Below, in pieces: positions 2,623-39,050 of a stretch of 64,000 bases of DNA. The stretch comes from Felis catus (lineage: Eukaryota). The notes beneath the pieces were generated by a model. The model was given only the letters and a program-made list of their open reading frames with translations, was not told where the DNA came from and made no database searches. The translations under genes were made by a program, and so were the position numbers. The stretch is from positions 82,894,001-82,958,000 of the forward strand of contig NC_058374.1 in NCBI RefSeq assembly GCF_018350175.1, given 5' to 3'. Within the stretch, counting starts at the first letter, position 1. The number at the start of each line of letters is the position of its first letter.

Positions 2623-6316
<3,694 letters not shown>

Positions 6317-7205: not shown

Positions 7206-7424
7206 TCAGTTGTGCTCAAGTTTGGTGATGAACTTGGGACCTAGAGATGAGTGCTGGGAGATGGTAGAGAAGGCACAATGGGACATACTGGTAGGCTCCA
7301 GCATCTCTATACTGTGGCAAGTCATATAGGCCACAGACTTTTCCCATGAAGCCCCAGAAGAGAGCAGAAATTTGAAGGAGAGGTCTGCAGTATTGGTCAC
7401 TAGCATTGGTCCCATCCAGTACAC
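7206..7424 (-). pseudogene. AQP14: Aquaporin pseudogene terminal exon equivalent to MIP exon 4
   Basis: VYWMGPMLVTNTADLSFKFLL...TCHSIEMLEPTSMSHCAFSTISQ...KLEHN*. It starts with the VYWxGP motif of MIP exon 4, and the acceptor reads CAA instead of CAG. Confidence 0.85.
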
Positions 7425-7699
7425 TTGTGGGGAGAGAGGAGGAACACAGATAATGGCCTATGCTCGTCTCTTCGTCCAATATCTAGCTTGGGGATAAATA
7501 GGAACAGTTACAGCAAAGGCAGAGAGTGCAACTAACCCACCCATATGTAGGAAGAGTTGCTGAGAACAGGTCAGAGGAGACTGAAGCTCCCAAATTCATG
7601 GAAGAAGAACAATCCATTAGAGATCTATGGAGTCTCTTGGGTTCTAGAAGCCCCACCAATCTCCTCACTTCAGGCCCTGTAACCCTTGTTGCACTTGAC

Positions 7700-7774
7700 T
7701 CAGAGATGCTCCCAGTTCCCAGTCACCTCTGTTAGTGAATATGCAGTGTTCACACTGCTTGTGGGAAAGGACCC
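7700..7774 (-). pseudogene. AQP14: Aquaporin pseudogene exon equivalent to MIP exon 3 (second NPA)
   Basis: cttctgtcctgtccag|GSFPTSSVNTAYSLTEVTGNWEHL*|GT versus [30 protein letters not shown]. Confidence 0.7.
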
Positions 7775-7965
7775 CTGGACAGGACAGAAGGTAGTCCTTT
7801 AACCATCATGGTGTTAAGAGCAGAGAATTTGGCAACAGATACTTTGGTTCAGATGTGGATGGGAATACAAAGTGACAGAACTAGTTATGACTCCTGGTGG
7901 GGTGTAAATTAGAATAATCACTTGGGAACACAGTATAACACCATCTTATAAGGATGAACAAACAA

Positions 7966-8923
7966 GGGTGCCCGGGTGGCTCAGTCAATTAAGCATCCAA
8001 CTTTGGCTGAGGTCATGATCTCACAGTTGGTGAGTTTGAGTCCCACATTGGGCTCTCTGCTGTCAGTGTGGAGCCTGCTTCAGATCCTCTGTCTCCCTCT
8101 CTCTGCCTCTCCCCTGTGCACATGCTCTCTCTCTCTCTCAAATAAATAAACATTAAAAAAAGATGAATAAACATACTTTCTGACCCAGGAATTTAGCTTC
8201 TCATGTATATACCCAAGAGGAACTTTTCTATACCTGCACCAGCAGACATGTACAAGAATACTGAGAGCAGCACTATTCACAATAGCAAAAAAAACTTGAA
8301 GCAACCCAAATACCCATCGATGGGAGANNNNNNNNNNNNNNNNNNNNNNNNNNNNNNNNNNNNNNNNNNNNNNNNNNNNNNNNNNNNNNNNNNNNNNNNN
8401 NNNNNNNNNNNNNNNNNNNNNNNNNNNNNNNNNNNNNNNNNNNNNNNNNNNNNNNNNNNNNNNNNNNNNNNACTATTGCAGTGATACTCAATAATAGGGA
8501 TGTATTTTAGCAATACAATATCAAGTAAAAAAAAAAAGTCCCTGATGATGATACATGGCATAACCTTTTTGTAAAGTTAAAAAAAATCAGGGCACCTGTC
8601 TGGCTCAGTTGGTAGAGCATGCAACTCTAGATCTTGGGGTTGTGCATTTGGGCCCCACATTGGATTGCAGAGATTACTTAAAAAAAACTTAGGAGGGGCA
8701 CCTGGGTGGCTCAGTTGGTTGGGTGACCGACTTCAGCTCAGGTCATGATGTCACAGTTCGTGAGTTCAAGCCCCATGTCAGGCTCTGTGCTAACAGCTAA
8801 GGGCCTGGAACCTGCTTCAGATTCTGTGGCTTCCTCTCTTTCTCTACCCCTTCCCTGCTCATGCTCTGTGTCTCTCTGTCTCTCAATAATAAATACACAT
8901 TAAAAAAAATAAAGAAAAAAAAC

Positions 8924-8954
<31 letters not shown>

Positions 8955-9912
8955 CAAAAAAACTTAGGATCTGGGGCGCCTGGGTGGCTCAGTCGGTTAA
9001 GCATCCAACTTCGGCTCAGGTCACGATCTTGCAGTCTGTGAGTTCGAGCCCCACGTCGGGCTCTGTGCTGACTGCTCAGAGCCTGGAGCCTGTTTCAGAT
9101 TCTGTGTCTCCCTCTCTCTCTGACCCTCCCCTGTTCATGCTCTGTCTCTCTGTCTCAAAAGTAAATAAACGTTAAAAAAAAATTAAAAAAAACCCAACAA
9201 CTTAGGGATGCCTGGGTGGTTCAGTCAGTTAAGTGTGTGACTCTTGATCTCAGCTCAGGTCTTGATATCAGGGTTGTAAGTTCAAGCCCTGCATTGGGCT
9301 CCANNNNNNNNNNNNNNNNNNNNNNNNNNNNNNNNNNNNNNNNNNNNNNNNNNNNNNNNNNNNNNNNNNNNNNNNNNNNNNNNNNNNNNNNNNNNNNNNN
9401 NNNNNNNNNNNNNNNNNNNNNNNNNNNNNNNNNNNNNNNNNNNNNNNNNNNNNNNNNNNNNNNNNNNNNNNNNNNNNNNNNNNNNNNNNNNNNNNGCTCA
9501 GTCGGTTGAGTGTCTGACTCTTGATTTCAGCTCAAGTCATGATCCCAGGATCATTGGATCAAGCCCTGCATTGGGCTCCACATTCAGTGTGGAGATATTC
9601 TCCTCTCTCTCTCTCTCCCCCTCCCTCCCTCTGCCCTGCTTCCCCATTCACACACTCTCTCTCTAAAATAAAATAAAATTAAAAATTAAATTAAAAAAAA
9701 AGAATAACATTTAAAAAAAAATGGGGCACCTGGGTGGCTCAGTCAGTTAAGTGTCCGACTTCAGCTCAGGTCATAATCTCATGGTTCATGGGTTTGAGCC
9801 CCACGTTGGGCTCTGTGCTGACAGCTCAGAGCCTAGAGCCTGCTTCAGATTCTGTGTCCCCCTCTCTCTCTGCCCCTCACCTGCTCACACTCTGTTTCTC
9901 TCTCAGAAAGAG

Positions 9913-9967
<55 letters not shown>

Positions 9968-10280
9968 GTAAAGTTAAAAAAATCTAAAATAAAAATATGC
10001 TTTCAGAACACATATAGATGAAATGAAACTACTACAAAAAAACCCACAAAGAATGATGAACACAGGCTTCAGGATGGTGTTTACTTCAAGTGTGTGGGAG
10101 GAGGGGATGAACTGGAATATTTACATACATACATGTAGATTTCTGTGATTTCAAAAAGGTTCCAGTTTTTCTGTTACATGGTTGGTTAGTAATGGTGCTT
10201 AATTGGAGTGCCTGGCTGGCTTAGTCAGTGGAACATGAGGTTCCTGATCTTGAGGTCATGAGTTCAAGCCCCACATTGGA
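7966..10280 (+). mobile_element. Cluster of tandem CAN-SINEs and old L1 fragments inside the pseudogene's second intron
   Basis: SINE heads near 7966, 8590, 8695, 8973, 9205, 9723 and 10205; two N gaps. Confidence 0.85.
9912..9966. repeat. (GAAA)n microsatellite in a SINE tail
   Basis: Direct observation. Confidence 0.9.
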
Positions 10281-11366
10281 TATAGAAATTACTTAAAAAA
10301 ATAATGGTGCTTAGTTTATTATTTAAAAACAAACAAACAAACTGAGGTATTCACCTTCCAATGCCCCTTCTCGGTAAAAGGAGCTTTCCTACTACTCTTC
10401 CTTTCTTATACTCTAATAAACTTTGGCCTGTTGCTTAAAAAAAAAAAAAAAAATTATGGGGAGGCAAATATAAGCCAATGAGGAGGGGATGTAATAAACA
10501 AAGGAATATTGCATGCACTTGAAATCCATAACAAACAACAGCAACAACAAACATCCTGGCTAAAGTTATCCCCATTAAATATAAATTCCAAGAGGGCAGG
10601 GATGCGTCTGATTTGTTCACCACTACAAACCCCATGCTTGACACACAGGAGACAGTAAATAAATCTTTGTTGAATAAATTAATGTAAGCTCTCCGAGCCT
10701 CAGTTTCCTCTGGATCAAATAACATAACATAGGTAAAGTCTTAATATGCTGCCTGGTACAGAATAAAGCACTTAATAAATGGAGACATTTGATGAGGGTT
10801 TTATTAACAGCAAGAACTTATCCCTAACCACCAACCCTACAGCCTCTTATAAGAAAGAACAGAAGGGCAAAGTGCAGTTAATTTGGTGCCCTTATAGACA
10901 GCAAATACAATGGTTACATTTCCTTTTTGAAGCTATCAACTTCTTTCTTTCTTTCCTTCTCCTTCTTTCCCTATCTCTGCCCAACGTGGAGCTCAAACTC
11001 ATGACCCCAAGAACAAGAGTCACATGCTCCACTGACTGAGTCAGATAGGTGCCCCAACTTCTACTCTTTATTCCTCATCAGATATTGATAAGAATCTCAT
11101 GGAGAACTGAACCCTGGTCCATTTCCTTTCATATTGGTCACTTAGCTGAATGCCAAGCTTTCAAATTCAATATGAGCTCTCAAAAACTCATTGGAGTTTT
11201 TGCATAGATTTACGTATAACTAGAATACCTACTGTTTTCTATTAACCTATCTTTAAAAACAAAACAAAACAAACAAAACAAAAACAAAAAACCCCAGCTG
11301 TGTCTCCCTTGAGGAGTGGAATCCAGCCTTCCCTACGTTCCTGCTTGGTATGGGTTGGGTTCTTAC

Positions 11367-11529
11367 CAATACCAGTGCTCCAGCAGTCACTGAGAAACCC
11401 ACTGCCAGACTGCCTGGCCCACCTGCATCCAATCACTGCTGGTGAGCCACAGCACACATGGTGAGTACCTGCTGGATAGTGGAGAAAAACTCCAAGCTCA
11501 GACCCTGGCCTATGACCCTTCCCGCTCAT
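11367..11529 (-). pseudogene. AQP14: Aquaporin pseudogene exon equivalent to MIP exon 2
   Basis: GQGLSLEFFSTIQQVLTMCAVAHQQ*LDAGGPGSLAVGFSVTAGALVL aligns ungapped over 48 codons with MIP exon 2; donor TTG|GTAAGA. The 5' boundary is approximate because the acceptor is lost. Confidence 0.85.
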
Positions 11530-11839
11530 AGATGAGACCAGAGATGCTAGGACCAGGGTGAGAGAACACAAACATCTCCCCATCTGCTCCCCCCTAGGCC
11601 CTACCATCTATCCACCAAGGAAGCTTTAAGCAAAGGATCTGCAGCAAGTCACCGAAATTCTTGAGTTGCTTGAGCCTAACTCATTGACCTATTTGCGTCA
11701 TACTGAAGGTGGCTAAATGAGAGGATGCGCAGAGCACGGGTGCCCCCTCTTTTGTTCATTCCTTAAAGTCTTATCAGCCATCCACCCTTATTACCTACCT
11801 AGTGTCACCCTATTCAGGAAGGTGGAGGCTGCTGCTTAC

Positions 11840-12169
11840 CTGGATGGCTAGCTGGGCTATAGCCACCTGGGGCAGTGCTAGGTAGAAAAGGACAGATGTC
11901 AACATGGCTGCTGTGCTCTGGGACAGGACATAGGACACCCCCCTAGAGGGGGCAAGCCAATTGGTACAGAACAGTACCAGAGTGAGGGCAGGATTTGAGT
12001 GTGGGCCCACATCAAAAATCTGCGCCATGCTCACCACCACCAGTTCTTCAGGCAAGGTTGAGGGACTGTGCCTAGCACAGAGCTACCACTGGGGCACGAG
12101 GCCCTAAGAACAGCCCCTACAAAGACCTTCAGCCTGCACATCTCTCCCAAACCCTTGGCTCTATAGGTC
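11840..12169 (-). pseudogene. AQP14: Aquaporin pseudogene exon equivalent to MIP exon 1 (first NPA)
   Basis: DL*SQGFGRDVQAE / VFVGAVLRAS... / [69 protein letters not shown]; donor CAG|GTAAGC. Confidence 0.85.
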
Positions 12170-13919
12170 TTGGGGGTACGTAGGGGAGGGAAGGCAAGAT
12201 CAGGCTGGCTGTCTGCTCCACTTTTCTCCCCCCTGGTCTCTCATATCTCTCCTTCTCCACCTCTCTCTGTCCCCCACCCCCTCAAAAAACTCTCCCAACC
12301 AGGCCTCCACCACTTCATCCTGCACTGCCCCTCCCCCAGCACCTGTTGTACAAGGAAGGAAGGACTAAAAGACAGAATAAGGGAGTGGTCAGAAAACAGA
12401 CCCCCACTGGCTTAGACTGGAATTTAACAACAGAGAAGAGGAAAGTTCTGTTTCCTCAGAAGCTTCTCAGAAGGAAGGAGTCTATGGAAAAAGATGGTGG
12501 TTTCTCCTCTCTGCAAGAATCTTATCTCCTAGATCATAGTTTTGCCAGTCAGGCTCAGAGTCTCTGTTTGGTGTCCTGCTCCAGTTTGGAGACTGCTTTT
12601 CTAGGTCTAAGTGAGTGGAGTTGGGATGAGGAGCAAGTGTTTCAGGTGCTTTTTCTGGAGGAAGAGGCAGCCAGAGAGGTGAGAGCTCTACTCTTGTGAT
12701 TAAAGAACATCTCATGTCCTCCCTTCAGCCAATAGAGAGGAACCTCATCCCTCAACCTGCTACCCCTACCCAGTCAGTGGTCTCCATAAGGGAGCCTTAG
12801 ACTTTTATACTCACACCTAAGCATCCACTATCCCCAGCTTTAGCCCTTCTCTCTCCTTATACTAAGCTCTTTCTTCCTTTTTAGCCCTCTGACCCAAACT
12901 CACTAAGTGAGCAAGAGCTTATAATGGCTTCTGTCCACCAGAGGTGCTTACAGTGAAGGTAGAGACTCATCCTTCCACTTCCTAATCATCTTTATAAACC
13001 TGGGTTTCGGGAGCCAGAGAGGTAAAGAGGAAAGCTAAACTGAGGATCTGGAAGACAATAAGAATTCTAGGGAAGGCAAGGTAAGAATATTTCCATTCCT
13101 CACCAGAAACAGAGCAAGCCAGCAAGAAAGTATCAAGGCTGAATTGGCAATCAGGCCATTGGAATCTGCAAAAGAAAGTTCCTTTGAGGAAAACTGCCTG
13201 GGAGTGGAGGGGATTCCTGGAGTCTAACACTCTTGGGATCACCCAGGACAGACCCTAATTTGTCTTCGTCTTCTTTTCTGGTTAGCTTGTTCGCTTTTTG
13301 TGTTATCACTCTACTTCATTCTTGTATTTGGGGCTCTTTTCAGGGGTTGCCAGAATTTTTAATTCTAGATTCTCTGACTTCTCTCATCTGGCCTTAAATA
13401 AGCATACAAAATTTTTGAATTTTTTTTCCTACTAAGAACTATGAAAGTGGAGAAATAGGATTTGTAAAATAACAAACTTGGAGTAATTACAAAGTTATTT
13501 TGTAACTTGTAGTAGTGATCATCCTAGAGTCTCAAATATCTCTACAGTAGACTGAATTATCTCTGGGTTACTAACAATCAGCCTTCCAACCTCTTTATAT
13601 TCCTGGGGCTAGGGATCCTAAGTTCACTATACCCTCTTCCATAAAGAAGGCTCCATTTCTCAGTCTCCTAGAGGTGCTATACGAAGTATAATCCATAATA
13701 TTAGGTAGTGAGTGCATCTATAAATCTCAGAGAATCTGCAGGCAGAGCTGTTTGTCTTGTTTCATTTCTCCACAGGGGTTTCATGTAATTACCATACCCA
13801 CCTCTGAGGTTATCCAGGACCAGTTTACTACCTCTCTGAAGTTGCTCCCTGGCCAGTCCATATCATCATGACCTAAAGAATAACCTAGGTCTGAGTTTCA
13901 TAAAAATATCTAACCTGCT

Positions 13920-14951
13920 GGGGTACCTGGGTGGCTCAGTCAGTTAAGCATCTAACTTTGGGTTTCAGCTCAGGTCATGATCTGTTTGTGAGTTTAAGCC
14001 CCACGCTGGGCTCCATGCTGACAGTGCAGAGCCTGCTTGGGATTCTCTCTCCGCCCCTCCCCCACTTGCTCAGTCTCTCTCTCAAAAATAAATAAACAAA
14101 CTTAAAAAAATATATATCTAACCTGCTGACCTAACAGGATTGTATCAGGATCAAATGAGATATACCCTGGCAATATACACATTAAGTTAGCTGCCTTAAA
14201 ATGTAAATGAACTGATTCATGAGTTAATCATATATATACATAATTTATGATTATCAAGTATGAACATCCTCTCTGGAAATTACAATGTGGGTGAATCGAG
14301 ATATGGTCCTGAGGGGTTGGGTGAACTTCCATCTCTCCATCTACCATGTGGAATCTCTATCCCAGCCCCATATTCAGAATGCCAGATCAGCATGTAACCC
14401 AGCTCCATTGTGTGGACAGTTTCATAGGACAAAGGCCCCAGCATAGCACAAGCCAGCCTAGCAGCCCCTTTGGCTAGCTCCTGAGGGCCCCCCTTCTCTC
14501 TCTTTCTCTGGTTATGCTTTGCTGACTGCTGACTCCTGGCAAAGTCCAGAACAATCACCAAGCTCTGTGCATCATCCCTCTCCCATCCATAGTTAAGGGC
14601 TCCAATTAGCACTTGGATCAGGTGAGAGCTCCCACATATTAGAAATGGGCTAATTCAAGAAACAGAATGAAAATAGACTGAAACATCCTGTACTTGGCTC
14701 CTTCTCCCCTTCTTTTCATAGGGAGTCAGATACAACTCTAAGCCAGGGAGACCAGTGCTCACTATGGTTAGGTTCTGTTCTAAGTAGTTAATAGTATGTG
14801 TGTTATCTCACGTACTGGTTTTCCCTAGGACTGCACAGTTTATTCCCTACTTATTCTATTGACATCCTATCCTTGGATGACTTCACCTATGTCTGCTCTC
14901 CCTCAAAAATTATTTTTTTAATTAAAAAATTTTTTTTCAAAGTTTATTTAT

Positions 14952-15001
<50 letters not shown>

Positions 15002-15780
15002 CCCACAAGCTGGGAGGGGCAGAGAGAAGGAGAGAACAGAATCCCAAGCAGGCTCCGCATCATCCATGCAGAGCCTGATGCAGGGCTTGAACTCATGAAC
15101 TGCGAGATCATGACCTAGCCGAAATCAAGAGCTGGATGCTTAACTAACTGTGCTACCCAGGCACCCCTCTCCCTCAAAATTTATATCTATATATTTACAG
15201 AAAATTTTCAGCTGGGTGTCCTATGGACACCTCAAATACAGCCTGTCTGAAACAGAATGGATTATCTTCCCCCCATTCAAACATGCTTTTCTTCTGTATC
15301 CAATCATTAAATCAGAAACCTATGAATCAACTTTGATTCCTTCCCCTATCCTCCCATTTTCACCTAACCAGTCACCACCAGAACTCTACCAATTCTGTCT
15401 TTTAGATGACTTAACCCACACCATGTCCCACCTGAGAACTCTATATCCTGTTTGACCCTGTTTCTGGTCTCATTCCCTCTCCAATTCATTCTCTATGTTG
15501 CTGTCAGCTTTATCTTTATAAAAACACCTGTAATTTGTCATTTCCCTGGGTCCCTTCAACAGCTCCTGAACATCTGAAAGACATTACTATGGGGTGCCTG
15601 GGTAGCTCAGTCAGTTAAGTATTTGAGGTTAAGCGCCTGACTCTTAATTCTGGCTCAGGTCATGATCTTACAGTTCCTGGGATCAAGCCCTGAGTCAGGC
15701 TCTGCACTGCCATTGCAGTTGGAATTGCAGTTGGGATTCTTTCTCTCCCTTTCTCTCAAAATAAATAAATAAACATCAAA
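13920..15780. mobile_element. Three CAN-SINEs (13920-14110 +, 14915-15166 -, 15591-15780 +) with probable L2/MIR remnants
   Basis: Consensus heads and tails visible. Confidence 0.75.
14955..14998. repeat. (GA)n microsatellite within a SINE
   Basis: Direct observation. Confidence 0.9.
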
Positions 15781-17369
15781 TTAAAATACATTACTATAAA
15801 TACAGGACTCCTCATAATTTACCCTCAACTTTTCCAACTGTTCTCCATATCTCTGCAGCATGAGGCCCTGGCAATTTTGTACTTCTTGTGGCTTCTCAAA
15901 TACTTCATTCTGTTTCATTACCCAGTGCTTTAGCAGAAGCTGTTCCCTACACCTTGAATGTCTTTTTCCCTTTCATATGTCAAGTGAAACCCTATCATTT
16001 CTTAATTATTATGCATGGAAACGTTAAGAATTAATTACTTGTACATTAGCAACGAGGTAGGTAAATCATCTCAATGACGAAGGTGAGTTTTTATCAGATA
16101 GATGGTCAGTCTGTGAAAGTAAAATAATACAACACATGACAGGCAAGAAGCTATTTCCTCAGCAGGGAATAAAGTAACAGAGGTGTATCTAAGTGACAGT
16201 GTGAGAAATCTGCAATGATTGCTTCAGCTCTCACACCTAGGATGGAAACAAAGGAGAAAAGCTACAGAAACAGAACTCAGGAACTTTCTTCTCATTACCC
16301 CCAAAATACAAAGTACTGAGAGAGCAGGACTTTTCAGAAGGAATGCTCTCCTCCATGCCTTCGCTCCTAGGCTTAGGAGGAACATAAACCACTCTTCTCA
16401 GACACATTAGGCAGGATGTGTGAAGGCTGGACCAGGCTGACCCCTGGTGGAGAGAATGAACCAGTCATTGCACTCCAAGAATGTGATCGCAACACTTTCT
16501 CCCTTTATCCTCGTTCATTTACTAATTCAAAAACAACAGTACTTACCCTGTGTTTAGGGTAAAACCGAGGCCTTAGGTCACAGAGAACAAAGGGCTTAAT
16601 CGCCATTCCTAAGATTTCTTAAGAAACCATTCTTAATTCCCATTCTTAAGAATCTAATGGGTGAGATAAGTAGCTGCCCCTTTAAATGTTCTCTTCTCGG
16701 CAGCCCTAGGGAGAGTGGGAGTCGTTAGGCGGCTAATGCAGTTAAGTAGTCCAGGGGAGAAATGTGATGGGGATTGAACGACCATCAGATATATGTGAGG
16801 GAGACAAATCCAAGGGCTTCCAGGTTTCTGGCTTGGGCAACTGGTTGGTTATGGGTTGCAGTTCACAGGGTCAGGGAACCTACGCGGAGGAGGAATGGTG
16901 TGTAAGAAGACGAAGTAAGTTTTAGACACGTTAAGTTTGAGGTCACGGGAGGGATGGGAGTGGGCTACATTCAGGTAGAAATCTCTAATAGGTTGTTGGG
17001 ATATACAAATGGGATATACAAATCAGGAAAGAAATATGGGGTAGGGATTTAAAGTCCTTCTCCAGTAACTCTGAACATATAAAAACCAACGTTTACAGTA
17101 TTTACACATTATTATAAAACAGCCTGCTACTTAACCTAGTGGTTATTTGTCAAGTTGTATTCTAGGTTATGCTCTCGTTTAATTTTTGTCAAGGTCTAAA
17201 GGGTTATTTTTTACAAATGAGAACACTTAAGGATCAGATTAAGTGATTTGCCCAAGGTCACACAGAGGAGCTAGGTTTGAATCCGATTACTGTTTAATTC
17301 TAAAATCTATACTTTCTGACGTCTTGCTACACCGTCTTTCTAAAGGTCCTACTTGGTAAAAACGTGAGC

Positions 17370-17670
17370 AGCACTGCCGGAAAAAAAACGAAATAAACCG
17401 TACCAAGCGCATGCGGACCAAGAACACATTTCACTAAGATGGCGGCTCCCCTGCTGGACGCAGGCTCCCTTACGTCATCACACTGCGCGGCCGCCTTTCG
17501 CGCACCACGTCGGAAAGTAGCAGGCGGGCAGATGGCCAGGTCCCAGGCCAGAGGGCGTGCCCTATTCATCCCTGGCGCAAGATGGCGCTGCCTTTTGCAC
17601 GTTCGCTGTTCTTGTGCCGCTGGGGAGCTAAACGATTGGGGGTAGCCGTCGCGGAAGCCCGCAGAGGTAG
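17370..17670 (+). promoter_or_regulatory. SPRYD4: SPRYD4 CpG-island promoter
   Basis: NRF1-like GCGCATGCGG (17407-17416), YY1 AAGATGGCGGC (17436-17446), CRE-like TTACGTCA (17470-17477) and ETS-like CGGAA motifs. Confidence 0.7.
17582..17666 (+). CDS. SPRYD4: SPRYD4 exon 1 (coding part)
   Basis: AAGATGG start; Arg-rich presequence-like peptide; donor GAG|GTAGG, phase 1. Confidence 0.93.
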
Positions 17671-18520
17671 GATTATCTCTTTTACTCTCTTTTATCTCCA
17701 AAATGGTTTCCGTTATTCCCGAGAGTCCCCTTGGGTCTCTCCCTGATCTGCTTTGGTCTTGAGAGTCCAAACCTGGGACACAAGCTGGCTTTTTTTTTTT
17801 TTTTTTTATCCCGAGGCTTTTCCAGTCTGAAAGCCCATATTGAAGCGCCTCACTCTTGCCCGCGTGACATTTTTTCTGTTTCCTCGTGAGCGCATGACTG
17901 TTTCAGATCGTAATACGTATATATCACTAGATTTAGGGGTTTAGCGCTCGTCATCATCTAATCTCTTTGCTCTGCTCACAGGCATCAGTTTCAAACTGGA
18001 AGAAAAAACCGCCCACAGCAGCCTGGCGCTCTTCAAAGGTGACACAGGTGTCAAGTATGGCATAGTAGGATTGGAGCCCACCAAGTTGGCCCTGAATGTG
18101 GAGCGCTTCCGGGAATGGGCCGTAGTGCTGGCAGACACAGCAGTCACCAGTGGCAGGCACTACTGGGAAGTGACAGTGAAGCGCTCCCACCAATTCCGAA
18201 TAGGAGTGGCAGATGTGGATATGTCCCGGGATAGCTGCATCGGTGTTGACGATCGTTCCTGGGTGTTCACGTATGCCCAGCGCAAGTGGCACACCATGTT
18301 GGCCAACGAAAAAGCCCCTATTGAGGGCATGGGGCAGCCAGAGAAGGTGGGGCTGTTGCTGGAGTATGAGGCCCAAAAGCTGAGCCTGGTGGATGTGAGC
18401 AGGGTTGCTGTGGTCCACACGCTACAGACAGATTTCCGAGGTCCAGTGGTACCTGCCTTTGCCCTATGGGATGGAGAGCTGCTGACCCACTCAGGGCTTG
18501 AAGTGCCTAAAGGCCTCTAG
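17582..18520 (+). CDS. SPRYD4: SPRY domain-containing protein 4, 2 exons, 207 aa
   Basis: Exons 17582-17666 (85 nt) and 17982-18520 (539 nt) sum to 624 nt; MALPFARSLFLCRWGAKRLG...GRHYWEVTVK...LEVPKGL*. Confidence 0.96.
17982..18520 (+). CDS. SPRYD4: SPRYD4 exon 2 (B30.2/SPRY domain)
   Basis: ctcacag|GC ATC AGT TTC; ISFKLEEKTAHSSL...GRHYWEV...VGLLLEYEAQKLSLVDV; TAG at 18518-18520. Confidence 0.96.
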
Positions 18521-37629: not shown

Positions 37630-39050
37630 CTTCTTTTTTAATTTAATTTAATTTTTTAATTTACATCCATGTTAGCATATAGTGCAACAATGATTTCAGG
37701 AGTAGATCCCATAATGCCCCATCCCCCCTCCCACAACCCCTCCAGTAACCCTCTGTTTGTTCTCCATATTTAAGTCTCTTACGTTTTGTCCCCCTCCCTG
37801 TTTTTATATTATTTTTGCTTCCCTTCCTATGTGTTCATCTGTTCTGTGTCTTAAAGTCCTCATATGAGTGAAATCATATGATATTTGTCTTTCTCTAATT
37901 TCGCTTGCACAATACTCTTCAGTTCCATCCACGTAGTTGCAAATGGCAAGATTTCATTCTTTTTGATTGCCGAGTAATACTCCATTGTGTATATATACCA
38001 CATCTTCTTTATCAATTCACCCATCAGTGGACATTTGGGCTCTTTCCATACTTTGGCTATTATTGATAGTGCTGCTATAAACATTGGGGTGCATATGCCC
38101 CTTCGAAATAGCATACCTGTATCCCTTGGATAAATACCTAGTAGTGNNNNNNNNNNNNNNNNNNNNNNNNNNNNNNNNNNNNNNNNNNNNNNNNNNNNNN
38201 NNNNNNNNNNNNNNNNNNNNNNNNNNNNNNNNNNNNNNNNNNNNNNNNNNNNNNNNNNNNNNNNNNNNNNNNNNNNNNNNNNNNNNNNNNNNNNNNNNTT
38301 GTGAATGTTAGTCATTCTGACAAGTGTAAGGTGGTATCTCATTGTGGTTTTGATTTGTATTTCCTGATGATGAGTGAAGTTGAGCATTTTTTCATGTGTC
38401 GGTTGGCCATCTGGATGTCGTCTTTGGAGAAGTGCCTATTCATGTCTTTTGCCCATTTCTTCACTGGATTATTTGTTTTTTGGGTGTTGAGTTTGATAAG
38501 TTGTTTATAGATTTTGGATACTAACCCTTTATCTGATATGTCGTTCGCAAATATCTTCTCCCATTCCATTGCTTGCCTTTTAATTTTGCTGATTGTTTCC
38601 TTCGCCGTGCAGAAGCTTTTTATTTTGATGGGGTCACAATAACTCATTTTTGCTTTTGTTTCCTTTGCCTCTGGAGATGTGTTGAGTAAGAAGTTGCTGT
38701 GGCCAAGGTCAAAGAGGTTTTTGCCTGCTTTCTCCTCTAGGATTTTGATGGCTTCCTGTCTTACATTTAGGTCTTTCATCCATTTTGAGTTTATTTTGTG
38801 TATGGTGTAAGAAAGTGGTCTAGTTTCAATCTTCTGCATGTCACTGTCCAGTTTTCCTAGCACCACTTGCTGAAGAGACTGTCTTTATTCCATTGGATAT
38901 TCTTTCCTGCTTTGTCAAAGATTAGTTGGCCATATGTTTGTGGGTCCATTTCTGGCTTTTCTCTTCGGTTCCATTGATCTGAGTGTCTATTTTTGTGCCA
39001 GTACCATACTGTCTTGATGATTACAGCTTTGTAATACAGCTTGAAGTCCA
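37630..39050 (-). mobile_element. 5'-truncated carnivore L1 (ORF2 C-terminal part + 3' UTR)
   Basis: ORF2-like peptides ([53 protein letters not shown]); T-rich tail; 14-bp TSD TTGTCAACCTTCTT at 37616-37629 and 39051-39064. Confidence 0.93.

Follow-up and report, generated by a model that had tools for sequence, protein, structure and literature searches.

What is the aquaporin-like sequence that lies directly upstream of MIP, the AQP0 gene, in the cat genome, and could it still encode a channel? We addressed this question in a window of 64,000 nucleotides (nt) of Felis catus DNA (assembly GCF_018350175.1, NC_058374.1, positions 82,894,001–82,958,000), within which all positions below are counted. 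Translation of the minus strand reveals six stop-free pieces between 7206 and 12183 that carry aquaporin sequence in gene order, and jointly these pieces represent the four core exons of a classical aquaporin gene, equivalent to exons 2–5 of AQP14. We conclude that the interval is almost certainly a eutherian AQP14 pseudogene beside MIP, presumably a unitary one in view of the loss reported across Eutheria (PMC4245216), our own analysis covering this one window. The assignment to AQP14 is based on the best protein matches, an AQP14-specific tail, per-exon trees and the position upstream of AQP0. The tests reported here establish what the relic sequence is, where it lies and which lesions it carries. 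This kind of find is already known, since eutherian AQP14 pseudogene fragments upstream of AQP0 have been published, Carnivora included (PMC4245216, PMC6906440), and what is new here is limited to the copy in a felid and the full map of its lesions.

Exon structure and lesions of the relic

The pieces of the relic, given in the order of transcription, are as follows.

12058–12183, minus strand: core exon 1, N-terminal part (AQP14 exon 2 of 5), with the end of the N-terminus, transmembrane segment 1 (TM1) and loop A, read in another frame than the exon remainder
12056–12057, minus strand: frameshift site, two leftover bases at an expected leucine codon, corresponding to a 1-nt deletion
11840–12055, minus strand: core exon 1, C-terminal part, with TM2, the first Asn-Pro-Ala (NPA) motif, which is kept, and TM3
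11367–11531, minus strand: core exon 2, with TM4 and TM5; 165 nt, the length of MIP exon 2
7700–7774, minus strand: core exon 3, the loop E hemipore; 75 nt instead of 81
7206–7424, minus strand: core exon 4, with TM6 and an AQP14-type cytoplasmic tail

An initial annotation, made from the letters of the window before any search, had proposed four ordered minus-strand aquaporin segments, and both the translation and the colinear matches to an AQP14 profile bear this out. All four core exons of the presumed felid remnant were found in order, and the VYWMGP noted at the start of the last exon is seen in the 7206–7424 frame. The extent then given, 7206–12169, holds at its lower end, and homology continues about 15 nt further upstream, to 12183. 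Exon lengths and phase-0 junctions fit the aquaporin plan (165 nt for core exon 2, 81 minus 6 nt for core exon 3, 52 codons from the NPA motif to the end of core exon 1). The last of these counts is that of wombat AQP14; MIP has 53 codons. The relic introns measure 308, 3592 and 275 nt and are at conserved phase-0 positions. A processed retrocopy, already discounted in the initial annotation because of the introns, is rejected on the same ground.

The same annotation placed splice signals at the positions and phase of the MIP introns, and this proved right for the positions, the phase, all three donors and the acceptor of core exon 3; the acceptors of core exons 2 and 4 are lost. The phase-0 donor of core exon 1 is intact (CAG/gtaagc, GT at 11838–11839). 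Core exon 2 keeps its donor (TTG/gtaaga), and its acceptor AG has become AT (cat/ for cag/). Core exon 3 retains both an acceptor (ccag/) and a donor (/gtcaag), and the acceptor AG of core exon 4 has become AA (caa/).

Altogether the relic carries one frameshift, three in-frame TGA codons, an NPA to NTA change, an Arg to Tyr change, two 6-nt deletions and two lost acceptors. In core exon 1 the frame switches between VPQ and LPEEL, at a place where P0001, a related open reading frame (ORF) fragment taken up below, reads VPQLLPEEL in a single frame. Small indels are also found in the N-terminal part, and one of the 6-nt deletions stands directly before the first NPA. Core exon 2 is interrupted by two in-frame TGA codons (11526–11528 and 11433–11435). 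In core exon 3 the second NPA is NTA, the pore arginine is tyrosine, loop E has lost 6 nt in frame and the last codon is TGA (7700–7702), where other aquaporins carry tryptophan. Core exon 4 is an open frame of 72 codons that ends at a TGA at 7206–7208.

A second NPA, the pore arginine and an uninterrupted frame are hallmarks of a functional aquaporin, and all three are absent from the relic, which keeps the first NPA. In the selectivity filter, AQP14 proteins have Ala or Gly at the site of transmembrane domain 2 (TMD2), Ala, Thr, Val or Ile in TMD5, where other classical aquaporins have His, and then Gly and Arg in loop E (PMC4245216 Table 1). Core exon 2 of the relic retains GFSVTAGAL with Ala at the TMD5 site, as in platypus and turtle AQP14; the remaining sites (TMD2 and two in loop E) have decayed to Glu, Ser and Tyr, read by eye from the alignment. 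The frameshift, the stops, the lost pore residues, the deletions and the lost acceptors show that this AQP14 gene is dead.

Evidence for the AQP14 subfamily

Every exon piece was searched and placed separately. With the 71-residue piece of core exon 1, a phmmer search of 1.84 billion representative proteins returned ten proteins at E≤1e-3. Four of these are named and all four are AQP14: a wombat protein labelled 'aquaporin-4-like' (XP_027710792; 54.6 bits, 53% identity), platypus XP_039769335 (41.7 bits) and two Gopherus 'Aquaporin 14' entries (37.2 bits). Against solved structures, the same piece scored 27.7 bits to AQP4, 20.8 to AQP5, 17.1 to AQP1 and 16.6 to AQP0, the lowest-scoring vertebrate aquaporin. 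The best-match comparison that had been suggested as a check on the call thus gives 37–55 bits for AQP14 against 27.7–16.6 bits for AQP4, AQP5, AQP1 and AQP0. For this piece the AQP14 score is roughly double that of the next subfamily, AQP4.

Some affinity to AQP4 is visible. AQP4 is the closest solved relative of relic exon 1 and also of a genuine AQP14, that of platypus (178 bits), and the GNWE in loop E of the relic resembles AQP4. That AQP4 comes next for both the relic and platypus AQP14 agrees with the sister relation of AQP14 and AQP4 (PMC4245216). However, AQP4 reaches only half the AQP14 score for the exon-1 piece, in an alignment with a 2-residue gap before the NPA, and it differs in its aromatic Phe/His filter, its tail and its genomic site (PMC4245216).

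A homology search seeded with a tortoise AQP14 gave a reference set in which the best 120 relatives are all AQP14, including curated 'Aquaporin 14' entries from the 2019 paper on the subfamily (PMC6906440). Every relic piece aligns colinearly to these 120 references. By per-piece counts summed over about 240–254 residues, the relic is about 49% identical to the AQP14 of sugar glider and 45% identical to that of platypus. Identity to mammalian AQP14 amounts to 15–16 of 37 residues in the N-terminal piece and 34–35 of 71 (about 48%) in the exon-1 piece; core exon 3 shares 11–12 of 24 residues with the AQP14 references. The pieces of exons 2–4 score 8–52 bits against the references, the two pieces of core exon 2 reaching 22–23 bits each and core exon 4 reaching 45–52 bits to individual proteins.

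Core exon 4 is the most informative piece for the assignment. It scores 53.4 bits against an AQP14 profile, compared with 13.3 bits for MIP exon 4. Its BLASTP alignment with wombat AQP14 spans 69 residues (49% identity, 62 bits, E=3e-18) and continues to a common terminal KLEHN and the stop codon, whereas only 21 residues of TM6 match cat MIP exon 4. Searches of solved structures with the first piece of core exon 2 (2a), core exon 3 and core exon 4 found no aquaporin match, and the second piece of core exon 2 (2b) gave one weak match to AQP1 (E=0.12). We attribute the lack of structural matches for exons 2a, 3 and 4 to pieces that are too short or too decayed; what supports them is their match to the AQP14 references and their colinearity.

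The similarity also exceeds what the window yields by chance. We searched the 64 kb in all six frames, as 3322 stop-to-stop pieces, with a profile built from 91 AQP14 proteins. At E<0.01 nothing in the window matched this profile except four pieces of the relic and the four exons of MIP. From 12150 down to 7209, the relic matches fall at profile positions 17–48, 52–128, 132–155, 160–194, 179–204 and 207–266, in colinear order. Both stop-free pieces of core exon 2 are significant window-wide (E=0.003–0.006). Chance similarity is rejected, since window-wide matches are confined to MIP and the relic and the weak pieces are colinear with the strong ones. Significant likeness to a hidden Markov model of the MIP family, another check proposed at the outset, was obtained in part: core exon 1 matches Pfam MIP (PF00230) at E=5.7e-5 with 23.4 bits, under the gathering score of 25, and the shorter single pieces gave no Pfam match.

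The clustering with AQP14 that had been foreseen was examined in per-exon trees, where exons 1 and 4 both fall inside mammalian AQP14 with cat AQP0 as outgroup. In the exon-1 tree (35 rows, rooted on cat MIP exon 1) the relic groups with the ORF fragments P0001 and P0003 (support 100/98). This group is sister to wombat and sugar glider (99/96), with the monotremes next (90/90), and the whole is nested in amniote AQP14. In the exon-4 tree the relic stands within the mammalian AQP14 clade (97/95). The placement of the relic agrees with the species tree, as it should for a placental orthologue. Counted from the therian node, the exon-1 tree gives the relic about 1.2 changes per column and the marsupials about 0.07.

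P0001 and P0003, two short ORF fragments found in public read assemblies, have 69% and 55% identity to relic exon 1, respectively, and probably represent AQP14 relics from other placentals. One of the marsupial references has a peculiarity of its own: the wombat model XP_027710792.1 (P0002) has no second NPA hemipore, and where sugar glider and platypus carry the exon for loop E and the beginning of TM6 it has about 22 unrelated residues. Either this exon was mis-predicted or the wombat AQP14 is itself decayed.

Position points the same way. In all vertebrates that keep aqp14, the gene lies directly upstream of an AQP0 paralogue in the same orientation (PMC6906440), and the relic is found immediately upstream of MIP on the same strand, the MIP ATG (6170) being 1036 nt downstream of the relic stop (7206–7208). 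The named best matches, the AQP14 tail, the trees and this synteny together uphold the AQP14 identity that the initial annotation had proposed. Its further statement, that AQP14 lies beside AQP0 and is pseudogenised in therians, is correct for the position and for eutherian loss and too broad for marsupials, which keep AQP14 intact (PMC6906440, PMC4245216).

Some points weigh against the assignment. The N-terminal piece (profile positions 17–48, at 12055–12150) and core exon 3 (positions 179–204) are not significant singly, with window-wide E-values of 3.1 and 1; scaled to the nine pieces just upstream of exon 1 and to the 90 that lie between exons 2 and 4, these become about 0.008 and 0.03, respectively. 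Sarcopterygian AQP14 has five exons, the first of which encodes only 3–7 residues (PMC6906440), and a search upstream of the relic (12186–18000) with the pattern ATG-N9-GAA/GT did not identify this mini-exon of 3–7 codons. The sole match to the pattern, MKQNE/gta at 15902–15918 on the minus strand, resembles AQP14 mini-exons in its Met and Glu only, and about 0.2 such matches are expected by chance. Finally, the trees cover AQP14 with cat AQP0 exons as sole outgroup, so that the exclusion of AQP4, AQP1, AQP2, AQP5 and AQP6 relies on bit scores, the tail and synteny.

Decay of the relic and competing explanations

Our preferred account is as follows. Ancestrally, aqp14 stood head-to-tail with aqp0 (MIP), just upstream of it, and encoded an AQP4-related channel. 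Its function was lost in the placental lineage, and the carnivore copy persists only as drifting DNA; decay would have been neutral and would have begun before the sampled placental copies diverged. With its frameshift, stops, loss of the NPA and Arg, deletions and dead acceptors, the relic cannot give rise to a channel.

The related fragments bear on the timing. P0001 retains residues that are deleted in the cat copy, and P0003 reads in the +1 frame over about 12 residues, which points to two frameshifts of its own; some lesions, at least, are therefore lineage-specific. In addition, several radical replacements are common to the relic, P0001 and P0003, such as Glu in place of Gly in TM2 and Asp in place of Gly ahead of the NPA loop, which is consistent with relaxed constraint before the three diverged. 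We also simulated neutral decay, using the relic's own codons as a stand-in for the starting sequence. At 0.30–0.35 substitutions per site the simulation gave 50–54% amino acid identity and about five stops, with a probability of 0.19–0.26 for three stops or fewer. The observed 45–49% identity and three stops thus require neither late inactivation nor selection.

These results bear directly on a possible reuse of the locus, in which the relic no longer codes for a protein and now serves as a non-coding RNA or as upstream regulatory DNA for MIP. It lies near the MIP promoter, with its last exon ending about 1 kb from the MIP start; that exon is stop-free, and some splice signals survive. However, conservation of the last exon does not exceed that of the others, with 27 of 56 residues identical to sugar glider as against 34/71, 30/51 and 11/24 for exons 1, 2 and 3, and both the overall decay and the number of stops fit plain neutral drift. 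We consider such reuse very unlikely. A looser version, in which the relic is not fully inert because its last exon or donors were kept for MIP regulation or a non-coding RNA, and the related proposal of later, separate deaths of AQP14 in several placental lineages instead of a single loss in their common ancestor, have only a small chance of being correct; later independent losses would explain why readable exons occur only in some orders.

The relic could instead have arisen by tandem duplication of MIP/AQP0 or of a different classical aquaporin (AQP2, AQP5, AQP6, AQP4, AQP1 or AQP15) and then have decayed. It does share with MIP the classical aquaporin fold, a plan of four core exons with phase-0 introns and a tandem arrangement, and AQP0 was the one subfamily besides AQP14 in the trees. 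The ungapped alignments to MIP reported in the initial annotation are reproduced here. From the first NPA of exon 1, 52 codons align with 12 identities (positions 1, 2, 3, 5, 18, 22, 26, 30, 38, 42, 49 and 50), and in core exon 2 the alignment, first claimed over 48 codons, extends over all 55. In the latter exon 21 of 55 residues (38%) are identical to cat MIP, but 28 of 55 are identical to platypus AQP14. The 12 of 52 identities in exon 1 amount to 23%, to be compared with 34–35 of 71 to mammalian AQP14, and the AQP0 score of this piece is 16.6 bits against the 37–55 bits of AQP14. No protein other than AQP14 was identified among the matches at E≤1e-3 in 1.84 billion. The relic tail matches AQP14 to the final residue and finds no match in the MIP tail, and in the tree the relic stands beside marsupial AQP14, following the species tree. 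We therefore hold a decayed duplicate of MIP or of another classical aquaporin to be highly improbable. A recent MIP duplicate, for which the initial annotation had already judged the divergence too deep, is rejected, AQP0 giving the lowest score for exon 1 and exon 4 sharing TM6 only; MIP itself is intact.

That the AQP14 locus is instead a live gene, its lesions arising from errors of assembly or sequencing, or that a shortened protein is still made, is next to impossible: assembly gaps do lie nearby, the last exon is open for 72 codons to the ancestral stop and three donors and one acceptor are intact, but the gaps are intronic, at least 10 independent lesions spread over all four exons (among them NTA, the pore Tyr, three TGA, the frameshift and two acceptors) and change essential pore residues, the relic branch is more than 10-fold longer than the marsupial branches, and loss across Eutheria is reported in the literature (PMC4245216, PMC6906440).

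Surrounding sequence and place in the AQP14 family

The remaining features of the locus are the following.

2626–6170, minus strand: MIP/AQP0, intact, in four exons (6170–5811, 5300–5136, 4705–4625 and 2808–2626) with canonical splice sites; exon 1 matches Pfam MIP at E=6.6e-41
7775–11366, minus strand: intron between core exons 2 and 3 of the relic, 3592 nt, repeat-rich and holding both gaps of undetermined bases (N gaps)
18071–18520, plus strand: SPRY-domain ORF of 149 residues, SPRYD4-like (Pfam SPRY E=3.4e-12), on the far side of the relic interval

The MIP exons measure 360, 165, 81 and 183 nt, and MIP intron 1 contains a GT/CA-type microsatellite at about 5690–5740 that translates as a VCVCVC run. 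The ORF at 18071–18520 is probably the main exon of SPRYD4, a name given by analogy with the human MIP neighbourhood, and the gene order MIP, AQP14 relic, SPRYD4 would then be the same as around human MIP.

The two N gaps, at 8328–8471 and 9304–9495, are 553 nt and 1870 nt from the closest exon edge and cross no exon and no reading frame. About 46% of the 7775–11366 intron has copies elsewhere in the window, as interspersed repeats. The repeats comprise copies of a carnivore short interspersed element (SINE), probably in its feliform variant, an L1-like piece and a CTTT-type microsatellite, and the gap at 9304–9495 is flanked by repeat copies on either side. A long CTTT/GAAA-type microsatellite at 9900–9985 adjoins SINE copies in this intron. 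Elsewhere in the window, two adjoining ORFs of 175 residues on the minus strand (37860–38866) resemble ORF2 of LINE-1, a long interspersed element, and are broken by an N gap at 38147–38298.

AQP14 was defined by Finn et al. (2014), who described near-complete genes in Prototheria and Metatheria (PMC4245216), and functional genes are known from marsupials, monotremes, sauropsids, amphibians and fishes. The channel, with its non-aromatic selectivity filter, is permeable to water, urea, ammonia, peroxide and glycerol (Chauvigne et al., 2019; PMC6906440). The relic resembles functional AQP14, such as that of platypus (A0A7D3Q9Z1, P0057 in our set) and wombat (XP_027710792), in its exon boundaries, the TMD5 Ala, the tail, the stop position and the site upstream of AQP0; it alone has the frameshift, the three stops, the NTA, the pore Tyr, the two 6-nt deletions and the two lost acceptors. 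In eutherians AQP14 is pseudogenised (PMC6906440, PMC4245216). Exon fragments have been reported in Carnivora from ferret (AEYP01080245) and Weddell seal (APMU01097947) (PMC4245216), and dolphin has a C-terminal fragment with a premature stop (PMC4245216, PMC6906440). The cat relic shares with these fragments the family, the locus upstream of AQP0 and the degraded fate. It differs in that the papers describe 'exon fragments', whereas four ordered core exons and a base-level map of lesions are now available for the cat. The accession table of the 2014 paper has no felid among its AQP14 entries (PMC4245216), and no felid, carnivore or eutherian AQP14 entry was found in the 2019 supplementary material searched (PMC6906440).

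For the AQP14 family, the finding has little significance beyond bookkeeping, adding one more carnivore lineage with the wreck of AQP14 beside MIP. All four core exons are nevertheless still readable after about 0.3 substitutions per site of drift, and the base-level lesion map may be used for the timing and number of AQP14 losses in Eutheria. For annotators, aquaporin-like similarity upstream of MIP is a sign of this pseudogene and not of a new gene.

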